Shown here piece after piece: positions 24,101 through 30,100 of a stretch of 64,000 nucleotides of DNA; the first letter of the stretch is position 1, and each line of letters opens with the position of its first letter. The DNA is taken from the NCBI RefSeq assembly GCF_902459465.1, contig NC_047063.1:16554001-16618000 (forward strand), read 5' to 3'. The notes beneath the pieces are model-generated. The model worked only from the letters and a program-made list of their open reading frames with translations. It searched no databases and had not been told where the DNA came from. Source of the DNA: Asterias rubens (Eukaryota). The translations under genes were made by a program, and so were the position numbers.

Positions 24101-27100
24101 CAAACATAATTTCAATTGATTATTCATACCAAGATCATGCACCATGTAAATGTTTAAAACTGTGAACATTTAAATCTTTAATCTCAAAAACGTTGTGCAC
24201 ACCCTCAATTTTGGGTCCATAGCCAAAACCCTTTTCAAAGAAGAAGATTTGTTTTTTGCAATTTTGTGATTTTGTTTCCTTCAGGCTCCTGATGAGGTAG
24301 AGACACATGACAGAAAGCCGCCCAAGTCAAATACAATGAGGTTAAGAAGCAGAATCTTTGGTAAGAGTGCCTCAAAGTATCACAATGGGAAAGATACTGC
24401 ACTGTCTATTGATTACATGCAGTTGCCAGCTGAACCAGAAGAAGACGAGACCGAGTTTGGGATCGCTCAACCAGATCTGCCCGATAATGTAGCTATCAAG
24501 GTAAAAACAATTTAAATTCACATTTTTATTATTTCCATTTACTCATGTGACGGTTTTAAAGGTACCCAACATATTTTACTAATTTTTCCTTTAAATGTAC
24601 TATTTCTTTCATTTGTAAACGTATGACTTACTTGTTTATCCATCCGCCGATTGAGTTTGTTTTAAAAGCGTCTTTTCTATGCAAATTTACCTGTTTATAA
24701 TTTACACTCACTTTTGCAAATTACTTTCACGAGAGAGACAACAATTTAAACGGACTATGTTCTCTCCTCTCTATTTTCCAGGTCGAAATAAATACATTGC
24801 AAAGGCAAGCCAATCTCCTCAATATCCAGTTATTTTGACTCATAACATCCTGGTGTCACACTTTACATGAAAAATACAACTTACAGAGCAAACAAAAACA
24901 AACTTGAAGTAGCCTTGTACATCTGGATAATGTAAAACATAGGGCCGGGCTGTTTTGATAAAAGCATAAGCTTTTAAAAAACAGCCAGACTGACAAAGAA
25001 ACTGCATCGATTTCTCGAAACGCTATGATTAATCCTAACTCGAGTTATGACGAGCAACTCGTCCTAACTTAGGATGGCTTCAGTGCGTCCTAGCGTCTAT
25101 GGATACGGAACTTAACTCGTTCTAAAGCCAGGACTAATCCTGAGTTAGGAAGAGTTTGGTGGAAGCGACGGCAGGGCTGCTGTGGTTGAGCGGCGAGCGC
25201 TTTACACACTGGCCAACTAATACCAACACAAACTATAAGCACACCATGCACGCATTAATGGACACTATTGGTAATTCAAAATAATTATCATCACAAAACC
25301 TTTCTTTATTACCAGTATTGGGGAGAGGTTGATAGTATAAAACATTGTGAGAAACAGCTCCCTCTGAAGTGAAGTAGTTTTCGAGAAAGAAGTAATTTTC
25401 CACGAATTTGATTTCGAGACCTCGAGTGTAGAACTTGAGGTCTCGAAATCAAGCATCAGAACGCACACAACTTCGTGTGACAAGGGTGTTTTTTCTTTCA
25501 TTATTATCTCGCAACTTCTACAACCGATTGAGTTCAAATTTTCAGGTTTGTTATTTTATGCATTTGTTGAGATACACCAAGTGAGAAGACTGGTTTTTGA
25601 CAATTACCAATAGTGTCCACTGTCTTTAACATTACTATTACCTTTTCAGATTGAACATGGTAATTTTTCATGGGCTCCTTGTTCCTCATCAAGTTGCTTG
25701 TGTGATATCAATGTGGACATTCCTAAAGGTAAAACAGCCTCACCTTCCATAAAATATTATAAAGACGCCTCCTATTCTATTCTCACAATGTGCATAATGT
25801 CAATGAATAGCTGATCTAGAAAGTGAGTTGAGAAATGATAGTTAAATCCGAGGCGTTCGTTTGTTTACCTCACTTACAGGCACTGAACACTATTGGTAAT
25901 TACTAAAAATAATTGTGTAGCAAAACAACTTATTAGGTAACAGGCAGTGGAGTGCTGTTTGAAGTATAAAACATTGTTAGAAATGGCTCCCTCTGAAGTA
26001 ACGTAGTTTTCGAGATTTTTGAGGTCCCGAAATCAAGCATCTGAAAGCACACAACTTCGTATAACAAGGGTGTTTTTCTTCCATAATACTATCTCGCCAC
26101 TTCGACGACCAATTGAGTTCAAATGTTCACAGGTTTGTTATTTGATGCATATGTTAAGATACACCAAGTGAGAAGACTGGTCTTTGACAGTTCCCAATAG
26201 TGTCCTGTGTCTTAAATCAAGACGACGGTCAGATCAGACTGACCGAAACGTTGAGCTGAACAAACCTGCTCTTCTGCTCTTCTTAGAGCCCCCACTACCC
26301 ATAAAAGAGAGACTACAGGGTGTCACCGCAAACTTTCATCACTTGGTATTTTTCCACTATCCATAGCCTAAAGTCTCAGTTCAATATATCAAGGTAACTC
26401 TGCAGAATAAAATATCTATTTCGTAATCAAAGATTGAGAGTGATCTCCATTGCATCCTCCAGGTAGCTTGACGATGATTATAGGTCAGGTTGGGATGGGA
26501 AAGTCATCTTTGCTATCAGCTATACTTGGTGAGATGCACACTGTGTCGGGCACAGTCCAAATTAACAGGTAAGGCGTACGCCCTAGACACAATAACAAAA
26601 AGCTGTAGTAATTTTGTTTTCGAAATGTTGTCATCTTCGGTCGTACTAGCAACCCAGATATGTTTTTTGTAGTTGATGATTTTCCCAACACCAAGTAACA
26701 AAAATCCCACAGAAATGACTTTAATAAGTGGAGCACAAAACATGATCGCGAGTGCAATGTTATGCCTGGGCCGAGTTCACAAAGCAATAAAATTCATCGC
26801 AAGACAAATTGTCAGTATTACCATAGCGATTTGTACTGTGAAATTACACTTAACTTAGCTCCTACGATTATTTGGCAGTTAAATTCAATCTTAGCTCTTT
26901 GTGAAATCGACCCCTGATTTTGCATCCTAGACGGTAGGTGGTTTTAAAGCTAACATTTTTTTGTTCTTCCTTTTTTTAAACTAAAAAAATAAAAATAAAT
27001 AAGAGCTTTGATACGCCCAAGACAAAAGCACTATTTACAAACTAGCTATTTTATTTTGTATACCTATGCATAAAGCAGCAACATGTCAGTGGTTGCAAAA

Positions 27101-30100
27101 TGGGAACATCAACATATCTAACCAAACGTCCCTTTAATTATTGACCCAACAATGTTGAGGTTCAACATTTTTTCCCAGCTGAGAGCCTCTCTACTTCAAG
27201 ATACGAGGTTGCATCTGAGCTAATAAATGTGTTTGTGATGATGTGGTGCTGATATCGATTTGATGGTTTCACTTTTGGGAGAGTCTAGATACAATTTCTT
27301 AACAGTATCATTAGTCCGCTCTTTATATTAGTTGTTATACCTGTAGCTATATGCTTCTTCAGAATGCACCGTTTCTTTATCACATCGTCCAGGTAAGTGC
27401 ATTTCATAACCTGTGCCCAGTTTTATGAAACCTGTATTACAAAACTTTACTAAGGACAGACAAGTGTTGCTCAACAGAAGCAGAATACTAGCCAAAGTTG
27501 CATTAAGGTTGCATTGTTGTGGCTGGTGCCCACTCAATGTTTGCTTATAGCAAAGAAATTTGTCAAACAGTATTTTTTTCTGAACAGCTTTATAAAATTG
27601 GGCCCTGTGGTCTTATTGGTTATGTCCCTTGTAAATCCAATAACAGTAATGGATGCAAATATTCATTGTACAACAATCAACCAGACTATTTGCCCTTCAA
27701 GTTTTGTGTTAAATAGACTCCCTGCATTGGCCACCATCTTTGATGAAACGTGCACACGTGAAAGGAAAATCATTGGCTGAGAGCCGTGCGCAGTGCCAAC
27801 GTACAAACATTCAAGATGGTGGTCAATGACGTCATGTGATCCATCTACATTGATTGGAGTAGGCGAAAGACAAGATGGCCGAACCATGAATATTTGGTAT
27901 CACTTTCATAATTGAGGAAATGTAATTATTGTGCAGACCACTTGTCATCGTTTACCACCAGTTGTCGGTACTAACCGTTGTTTTCAAGATGCTGACGGGT
28001 CAGTGTGCTCTTCGTCATAAGACGGCTTTTGAACCTGAAAAGCCCGGTTCATACTTCCTGCGAATGCAAAATGCGATACGAATTTTGACGTCATATGGCT
28101 GTTTTCGCAGCGACTATTTTCGAAGTGAGTTGAGCACAAGTCAACCGATGCGAATTATTCGTTGCGAAAGATAACTGAATTTATAGTACAATGGGAAGCG
28201 GCAGCAAAGGATCAGGAGAAACTTGATCAAGGATCACTTGAACGGGGTGTAGACTCTCCATTTATCTTGACATTGAAGGTCTTTTGTTTTTGTTTCAGGG
28301 AATTACAAAGGATGGACAGTATAACAAAGTCTCCAATCTACGCACACTTCTCGGAGAGTCTTAATGGACTGTCAACTATACGTGCTTATAGGTAGGCCTG
28401 CTAGTCCCATTTCATAAAATAACTTATTTAACTGATCATAAAGACATTAGAAAGAAAAGCAGGTTAGATTAGTTTTCTATAAAAATATATTTTTTGAACG
28501 CCTTCTACTTTTGTCGGAATGGATTTCTAAGTACAAAAACTGGCCAGTTTTTCATCTTTGAGAGGGCAAGGCTTTGACATTATTTTGCAAAGGGCACTTC
28601 CAGTAGAAACTGCTTAAGTCAATTGAACAACTTATTATGGGGGCACAGAAGCCAATACCATGACATTAGAGGCAATTGCCTCCATGATCTATGTTTGAAT
28701 ACAGGGTTTGATTTCACAAAGCACCAACAGCTATCTTGAGATTACCATAGTGATTTGTGATATGCGAGACATCACTCTTTGCTTAGCAAGTAAGACTGGT
28801 TGGGATCTACAATCGATCTTAGCTTTTTCAAAAAAATTGAGCCCTCATTATGCCAACATAAATGGAATCATCCCTTCTTTTGAAAGGTTTCTTTTATTTG
28901 TTTGGATCAATTGTAACTTTAAAGACACTGGACACTATTGGTAATTGTCAAAGACCAGTCTTTTCACTTGATGTATCTCAGCATATGCATAAAGTAACAA
29001 ACCTGTGAAAATTTGTGCTCAATATTGGTCGTCAAACTTGCGAGATAACTATGACAGAAAAAACACCCTTGTCACCAGAAGTTGTGTGCTTTCAGATGAT
29101 TGATTTTGAGACCTCAAAATCTAACTCTGAGGTCTCGAAATCAAATTCGTAGTAAAATTACTCCTTTCTTGAAAACTACGTCACTTCAGAGGGAGCCGTT
29201 TCTCGCAATGTTGTATACTATCATCAGCTCCCCATTAGTCGTTTAAAGTAAGGTTTTATGCTAATACTTATTTTGAATAATTACCAGTAGTGTCCATTGC
29301 CTTACAATGTTTTCTTTTTTAATAGAGTTGAGAGGAGATTTAAGGAGTTGCTATTGGATGCTATAAATCTGAACACTCTGGCTTTCATTCATCTTAGTAC
29401 ATGCAATCGATGGCTCGGTGTTTCCTTGGTGGGTCTTTATAAACTATTACTGTATAACTTATTGATTGTAATGATTTGTTAAAGGTGCAATCATCAGTTA
29501 TTTTTTAATAATATTATTAAATTCAGCCCTAAACTCTATTTGTTACATTTATCATGCTTTATGCTACTTTATGCTATTTTTATTTTTACTCCACAATTTA
29601 TATATGTAGGCCTACTTGTGTGGGGTTTTTTTTTAGCATGGAAGTTACATGGACATAAATGTACCTGAATTGAATGTTTGAATTCAATTATGTAATATTA
29701 ACAAAACTGCTAGCAGTGTAACAGATTTGTTTTGTTTTTTTGGTGAACATTCACACATTGGATAAAAGCTATAGCTATTAGTCTATGACGTTCCATGATG
29801 GTGATGGAAAAGGAATGATGAACATGGGAAGACGGGTTAGGGAGCCTATGTGAGATTCGAACCAAATAACATCAACGTTCAAGGTTCAATGTTAAATATT
29901 TACTCATCAACAAAACCCAAACATTAAATTTTTCACTCAAGAGCGATCAGTTTAAAGAACACAACTTTTACAGTAAAGATGTATCAAGAACTAGATAGAA
30001 AAGAAAAAAAACACTGCAAAGGGGTCAATTTAAAACAAGAAACAGAGCTTGTAAATAGTCAGGGTCCTTATGCATGACCAATGACCTTGTCATTGTTTCA

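Follow-up and report, generated by a model that had tools for sequence, protein, structure and literature searches.

A SUR/ABCC9-like gene on the + strand of a 64,000-nucleotide stretch of the Asterias rubens genome (contig NC_047063.1 of assembly GCF_902459465.1, forward-strand positions 16,554,001 to 16,618,000; this whole stretch is called the window, and all positions below are counted from its first letter) lacks the coding sequence for most of its first nucleotide-binding domain (NBD1), the following linker and three of the six helices (TM12-14) of its second transmembrane domain (TMD2), and still reads as one open reading frame (ORF). On balance, and with modest confidence, we favor the explanation that a divergent SUR-like paralogue has very recently suffered a loss-of-function deletion, which may still be segregating.

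The gene was modeled from tblastn anchors provided by more than 60 full-length ABCC8/9-like proteins, with a junction solver that demanded GT-AG introns, matching phases and no stop. It runs from an ATG at 12178 to a TGA immediately 3' of 37843 (12178-37846 from start to stop codon) and contains 25 coding exons, all on the + strand (12178-37843), that add up to a 3573 nt coding sequence for 1191 residues with 0 internal stops. All introns are of the GT-AG type, giving 48 canonical splice sites. An earlier reading made from the DNA letters alone (the sequence-only reading) had proposed 26 exons and about 1192 residues without a stop; the lack of stops agrees with the present model, which has one exon fewer.

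Both ends of the encoded protein have the organization expected of this family. Specifically, exon 1 (12178-12741, 188 residues) codes for TMD0, as indicated by a match to positions 14-146 of the 159 positions of Pfam TMD0_ABC (E 7e-5; 23.5 bits, which is under the curated cut-off of 27) and by phmmer matches to ABCC9-like N-termini that reach E 4e-21 for the full-length protein P0011. Exons 2-12 (13509-13585, 14612-14774, 16586-16786, 16923-17075, 18137-18292, 20098-20232, 21597-21748, 23096-23244, 23805-23962, 24285-24500 and 25650-25728; overall 13509-25728) cover the L0 linker, TMD1, another linker and the start of NBD1. Six TMD1 helices are indicated by the colinearity of exons 4-10 with homologue residues 280-600 and by hydropathy peaks that match those of the paralogues, with exon 8 corresponding to ABC_membrane positions 177-221 of 274. 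At the other end, exons 16-18 (29326-29428, 30139-30252 and 30989-31100; overall 29326-31100) code for TM16-17 and the linker to NBD2, and exons 19-25 (32364-32491, 32795-32873, 33715-33823, 34608-34711, 35831-35964, 37116-37178 and 37706-37843; overall 32364-37843) code for a complete NBD2 that has ABC_tran matches and in which the Walker A, Q-loop, signature, Walker B and H-loop are all readable. The earlier statement that the NBD2 motifs are intact thus holds for all five.

The defect is located between these two parts. Exon 13 (26463-26568) codes for the NBD1 Walker A region and matches ABC_tran positions 13-45 of 137 as well as SUR2 residues 696-726 (E 1e-8); these are the only NBD1 positions of the domain profile that are recovered, with the remainder absent from the window. 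The exon ends in a phase-2 donor, where two spare bases are followed by GTAAGG with its GT at 26569, and both the position and the phase of this intron are shared with paralogue genes. The next exon, exon 14 (27306-27392, 87 nt), is preceded by an AG at 27304-27305, contributes the third base of the split codon in matching phase and aligns with ABCC2 residues 1120-1146, which constitute TM15. TMD2 therefore does not have its six helices (TM12-17), as the window picks up again at ABCC2 residue 1120, which lies near ABC_membrane position 140 when extrapolated from exon 15 at positions 168-197 of 274. Exon 15 (28299-28391, 93 nt) codes for the cytoplasmic extension of TM15 and a coupling helix and is the counterpart of vertebrate ABCC9 exon 28. 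An intron of only 737 bp (26569-27305) occupies the place where the paralogues have 8-11 kb and eight exons. The donor at 26568, the acceptor at 27305, their phases and their 737 bp spacing are as the sequence-only reading had given them.

Alignment with 43 full-length relatives places a single gap of 366-397 residues (median 381) in the window protein at this location, in good agreement with the in-frame loss of about 400 residues that had been proposed. When the segments of these 43 homologues that correspond to the missing block were compared by tblastn with both strands of the window, nothing was found except the expected NBD1/NBD2 cross-match at 35839-35970, which is the exon for the NBD2 signature and Walker B. 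A six-frame search of the 737-bp intron for remnants of the lost exons likewise recovered none, as scores did not exceed those of shuffled sequence. These results uphold the claim that the missing exons lie neither in this intron nor elsewhere in the window.

We located the downstream edge of the gap by comparison with two paralogue genes, namely locus L002, which encodes Diadema antillarum P0140, and locus L003 of assembly GCA_902459465.3, which encodes A. rubens P0161. All intron positions that could be compared are common to the window gene and these two genes, among them the phase-2 intron downstream of the Walker A exon and the exon 15-25 boundaries. In both paralogue genes the TM15 exon extends about 23 codons 5' of the equivalent of 27306. 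Recognizable homology to this exon begins in the window at 27295-27301, and the in-frame sequence upstream of 27295 contains two stops and no similarity. This indicates that exon 14 is a 5'-truncated remnant with one breakpoint inside the original exon and that the acceptor AG is made of old coding sequence, as had been suspected. Judged from the paralogue gene structures, the loss amounts to eight complete exons and a further 69 nt or so, a region that spans 8-11 kb in the paralogues. The acceptor has a pyrimidine content of 0.60 as compared with 0.50-0.85 for the other acceptors of the gene, and since exon 14 is entered and left in phase 2, splicing from exon 13 to exon 14 and from exon 13 to exon 15 would alike keep the frame. 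Finally, the hydropathy profile of the same-species paralogue P0161 has three helices inside the missing block and three after it.

The events that would account for this arrangement can be outlined as follows. The gene, a divergent representative of the SUR-like (ABCC8/9-like) family that is expanded in echinoderms, would have undergone a real genomic deletion. The upstream end of the deletion would lie about 730 bp past the donor of the Walker A exon and its downstream end about 69 nt within the TM15 exon, so that the eight exons coding for TM12-14, the linker and the remaining part of NBD1 were taken out. The AG at 27304-27305, situated in leftover coding sequence, would by chance have been in phase, so the gene would still read as a 1191-residue ORF. 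In any product, the NBD1 stub on the cytosolic side would run directly into the extracellular end of TM15, which would leave TM15-17 and NBD2 without their native sidedness and put the ABCC fold out of reach. The topology conflict that the sequence-only reading had predicted from the loss of three helices is thus borne out by the hydropathy of the P0161 block and by the joining of the stub to the outer end of TM15. With the ABCC fold unattainable, the allele would most likely be a loss-of-function allele, and with the other exons and splice sites intact and conserved residues kept, the deletion would have to be very young, on the scale of within-species polymorphism.

In regards to the state of the remaining gene, there are no stops, frameshifts or broken splice sites in the 25 exons, so the signs of decay that would be expected of a pseudogene are lacking, while the lesion itself removes essential parts of the protein (most of NBD1 and three helices). 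How quickly such decay would appear was addressed with a neutral simulation that included substitutions, indels at one tenth of the substitution rate and 96 splice bases. The simulated probability of the gene remaining intact was 0.075 at a divergence of d = 0.005 and 0.006 at d = 0.01, which under this model limits neutral divergence since any inactivation to at most about 0.5%. A natural yardstick is provided by an independent ENA metagenome contig that carries exon 1 (L001), which is 99.3% identical to the window over 1483 bp and about 0.65% different in the non-coding flanks. The differences between this contig and the window consist of a single non-synonymous change in exon 1 (Gly to Val at 12368), and of five substitutions and one 5-nt indel in the exon 1 flanks. 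Taken together, the intact exons, the conserved residues and the simulation leave three options, namely an inactivation that falls within the time-scale of present polymorphism, ongoing selection, or a deletion that is not real.

Phylogenetic analysis places the window protein within a 10-row echinoderm SUR-like clade (support of 98 in the Shimodaira-Hasegawa-like approximate likelihood ratio test, SH-aLRT), where its exact position on a long branch is unsure. Its end branch measures 0.96 substitutions per site relative to a median of 0.22, and its median identity to relatives is 34% for the N-terminal part and 56% for the C-terminal part, values at the low end of the family range. The family has 189 residues with an invariance of at least 95%, and the window protein retains 177 of them (94%), and this in both halves of the protein. 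Together with the intact NBD2 motifs, this retention gives the remaining parts the look of sequence under selection. The 12 changes are mostly conservative, their number is within the family range, and some full-length relatives carry more changes at invariant sites than the window protein does.

The A. rubens genome contains at least four other SUR-like genes, some of them in tandem, which implies that loss of one copy would be tolerated. SUR-like paralogues are numerous among ambulacrarians generally, with at least four in Asterias rubens, at least seven in Patiria miniata and several each in Glandiceps, Ptychodera and Diadema (proteins P0137-P0213 and loci L003-L005). Some of these are tandem neighbors (L004), and a single A. 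rubens chromosome carries three. We considered whether the A. rubens paralogue loci could be the same locus as the window and rejected this, as the three loci compared show no overlap with it. A literature search retrieved no paper on the function of ambulacrarian SUR-like proteins and no functional data for any echinoderm one, such as would show it to join and regulate a Kir6-type channel in the manner of a KATP subunit.

A closer relative of the window gene was sought in several ways. A phmmer search with exon 1 against 1.84 billion representative proteins gave 40% identity for the best full-length match, and word-index searches, including a profile search with the window's own exons, gave no full-length relative above about 50% identity and none that was flagged as the window's own protein. 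The alignment of echinoderm orthologues and paralogues that had been suggested as a check was achieved for paralogues; the exon 1 and profile searches returned no orthologue. At the level of a single exon, a 414-nt contig of single-copy depth in the DNA sequencing run X8 matches only exon 15 and a few flanking bases (28284-28398), at 93% identity (8 of 115 bases differ), and at this exon similarity to the three annotated A. rubens paralogues is no more than 72-77%. By this sequence comparison, a closer, unannotated copy of at least exon 15 is present in the X8 genome.

We also analyzed public sequencing data for the junction region. The segment 26380-27480 is present almost in full in runs of two organism labels, where 0.88 and 0.86 of the sampled words are found, with a range across runs of 0.33-0.88; part of it is also found in marine or algal metagenomes and in many low-coverage runs of a third label. 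In X8, which has high coverage, depth is that of single-copy sequence over 26372-26733 and 27096-27457 (about 200 over the latter), and a high-copy repeat occupies approximately 26734-27095 inside the 737-bp intron; a search for a second, similar copy of this repeat within the window found none. We consequently rejected a repeat-mediated collapse, given that the truncated exon end lies in single-copy sequence, where collapse at the intron repeat cannot explain the gap.

Contigs of the metagenome run X10 are identical to the window over 26423-26614 and 26913-27300. One of these, an 835-nt contig (record 13), fits 26913-27300 exactly, while its other 447 letters, which would be expected on 27301-27747, do not fit the window; depth arithmetic for X10 likewise leaves nothing on 27301-27374. 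The break of this contig at 27300 is within six bases of the onset of protein homology (27295-27301), and given this coincidence the candidate junction, a feature without strand, is placed at 27300|27301, which is probably the true position or within a few bases of it. The X10 contig may also hint at another arrangement in wild animals, possibly an undeleted allele. Attempts to find independent contigs across 27300 by exact-pattern scans of JGI metagenomes, by a protein search with a neighboring 69-residue ORF and by exact ORF look-ups yielded none.

Expression and annotation records were analyzed for the same region. Among the indexed RNA runs, the best contain 5-7% of the words of 24200-29600 and none covers exon 13 or 14. 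The matching words in runs X3 and X1 come from intronic repeats, the X1 pieces (27486-27638 and 28226-28387) are unspliced, and the 26568|27306 splice joint, which had been proposed as a check in RNA-seq data, was not seen in either run. Among the 1.84 billion representative proteins, a collection that includes the RefSeq proteins of A. rubens and A. amurensis, exon 1 is carried only by a 189-residue genomic ORF from ENA metagenome contigs. No annotated protein, transcript or orthologue with the short architecture was found in the protein collection or the indexed RNA runs, and this negative evidence argues against an expressed and conserved short form.

The sequence-only reading had named three possible explanations: an assembly error, a short SUR that is hard-wired in the genome, and a recent event in the form of a young pseudogene or a haplotype deletion. 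The last of these is supported by a breakpoint that falls inside an exon in single-copy sequence and by the intact remainder of the gene; the short SUR is disfavored by the missing transcript, annotated protein and orthologue; and an assembly error is unlikely. Several observations nonetheless weigh against a young loss-of-function deletion. Mapping over 5.4 kb, which is dominated by high-copy intronic repeats, displayed no reads or contigs that cross 27300|27301, and the X10 contig that leaves the window at 27300 could equally mean that the join in the window is wrong. The long end branch represents a long independent coding history, so that ongoing selection is not to be dismissed, and an intact 1191-codon ORF is also what would be expected of a functional short gene. 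Finally, the absence of RNA is weak evidence, as many runs are unindexed and contigs drop rare transcripts.

The first alternative is that the animal has a full-length gene and that the assembler, or haplotype purging, joined 27300 to 27301 and thereby dropped 8-11 kb. The sole independent contig at this place (X10 record 13) exits the window exactly at 27300 with X10 empty over 27301-27374, no contig that spans the join was displayed, and flawless other exons are what a functional full-length gene would be expected to show. However, single-copy sequence of even X8 depth flanks the join on both sides, the window contains no runs of N, and assembly errors seldom take the form of an internal deletion that begins and ends in unique sequence. 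A full-length gene should furthermore give rise to an exon 1 protein or transcript in A. rubens or A. amurensis, and there is none in the collection. We therefore consider it unlikely that the join was created during assembly, and infer that the deletion is present in the animal.

A second alternative, which we regard as quite unlikely, is that the gene codes for a functional, hard-wired short SUR-like protein (TMD0-TMD1-NBD1 stub-TM15-17-NBD2), or for a TMD0-TMD1 module with a tail, that is kept by selection. This explanation would accommodate the ORF and splice sites that are intact over 3573 nt, the complete set of NBD2 motifs, the retention of 94% of the family-invariant residues in both halves, and the in-frame splice across the deletion with an acceptor of ordinary pyrimidine content. 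It is at odds with the loss of an odd number of helices, which would invert the membrane sidedness of NBD2 and of the coupling helices, with the reduction of NBD1 to its first 60 or so residues, and with the failure to find a transcript, annotated protein or orthologue of this architecture. A much smaller TMD2 deletion of 31 residues is moreover enough to inactivate mouse SUR2 (PMC8021106). A comparable gap occurs in only one short relative, the ABCC9 model P0103 (1003 residues) of Sparus aurata, which looks like a faulty gene model, with unrelated filler between its parts, and was rejected as a parallel. There is only a small chance, in our estimate, that the deletion is fixed and that the 1191-residue product or its TMD0-TMD1 part is expressed and selected with an unconventional fold or topology. 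An old, long-drifting pseudogene is very improbable. The long end branch, the lack of annotation or expression evidence and a partial tandem copy of exon 21 that has decayed in the preceding intron would fit it, but it is nearly refuted by 25 exons free of stops, frameshifts and broken splice sites, by a simulated probability below 0.01 once neutral divergence reaches 1%, and by few, mostly conservative changes at invariant sites.

Additional repeated sequences are present in and around the gene. The tandem copy of part of exon 21 belongs to a duplication of about 215 bp (33375-33585 versus 33601-33797) that covers roughly the first 85 nt of exon 21, from the part of NBD2 ahead of the Q-loop, together with the intron 20 sequence just before it; the upstream copy (33375-33585) shows 74% identity, has several indels and is not in frame, and thus constitutes a decayed pseudo-exon within the intron. 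A high-copy interspersed repeat of about 390 bp occurs on both strands in many introns of the gene (14063-14455, 25259-25629, 28917-29303, 30374-30759, 31933-32309, 34744-35130 and others), and the A. rubens paralogue at L003 has intronic copies that share 76-93% identity with those of the window. The 64 kb are overall AT-rich, free of N and contain many interspersed repeats. Downstream of the gene there are two tandem copies of a 1.92-kb unit (approximately 42160-44080 and 44080-46000) that are 94-100% identical, followed at 46127-52848 by a block rich in G+C (0.45-0.49) that contains long ORFs and has direct repeats inside it.

If a young loss-of-function deletion is indeed the explanation, then the event is an ordinary one in which one copy of an expanded family has been caught at the moment of inactivation. 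It would also serve as a warning for annotation, as the intact 1191-residue ORF should not be named a functional ABCC9-like protein, and it may provide a structural-variant marker for Asterias populations. Were the deletion instead fixed and expressed, the gene would be the first naturally hard-wired ABCC without NBD1 and half of TMD2, and the loss of three helices next to an intact NBD2 would challenge views on how ABCC proteins insert and fold. The ambulacrarian SUR-like family with its many paralogues may be the more interesting subject.

The closest known relatives of the window gene are the ambulacrarian SUR-like paralogues (for example the A. rubens XP_ models P0161, P0146, P0202 and P0020, Diadema P0140 and Glandiceps P0144), which have the same domain order and TMD0 and, at all boundaries compared, the same intron positions and phases. 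These proteins differ in that they are 1500-1620 residues long with a complete NBD1 and six TMD2 helices, while the window gene is without 366-397 residues, and in that the window gene has a branch four times the median length and no close orthologue.

The window gene can also be compared with two short forms of mammalian SUR2. In mouse SUR2, skipping of exon 28 that is induced by the R1154Q mutation causes an in-frame loss of 31 residues and results in non-functional channels (PMC8021106). The skipped ABCC9 exon is 93 nt long and directly follows R1154 (PMC8021106), and window exon 15 has the same length of 93 nt. Both cases thus involve in-frame loss within TMD2 at conserved exon boundaries, with the exon 14/15 boundary of the window equivalent to the exon 27/28 boundary, and the 31 residues lost in mouse SUR2 directly follow the exon that is equivalent to window exon 14. 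The mouse case is however a splicing effect on an intact gene that removes 31 residues from a product shown to be non-functional, whereas the window has a genomic deletion of about 380 residues that is known from sequence. The second short form (SUR2A-55 or IES SUR2; Ye et al. 2009 cited in PMC6037880) is a mitochondrial protein of about 55 kDa, made from the full-length gene by non-canonical intraexonic splicing between exons 5 and 30 (PMC6037880). It resembles the window product in being derived from a SUR that has lost a large internal part and kept NBD2; the window form differs as it is genome-encoded, keeps TMD0 and TMD1 and has other boundaries. The earlier remark that a short SUR2 made by non-canonical splicing is known in mammals is therefore accurate as to its existence, but as a parallel it does not carry over, given the different mechanism and boundaries.

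The window gene can further be compared with unprocessed pseudogenes and segregating loss-of-function structural variants of expanded families, where a multi-exon deletion affects one of several copies, as is the case here. Typical unprocessed pseudogenes differ from the window gene, which has no stops or frameshifts yet and would thus be at the very start of decay. The window gene adds a further example to an already familiar class of events, the deletion of part of one copy in an expanded family.

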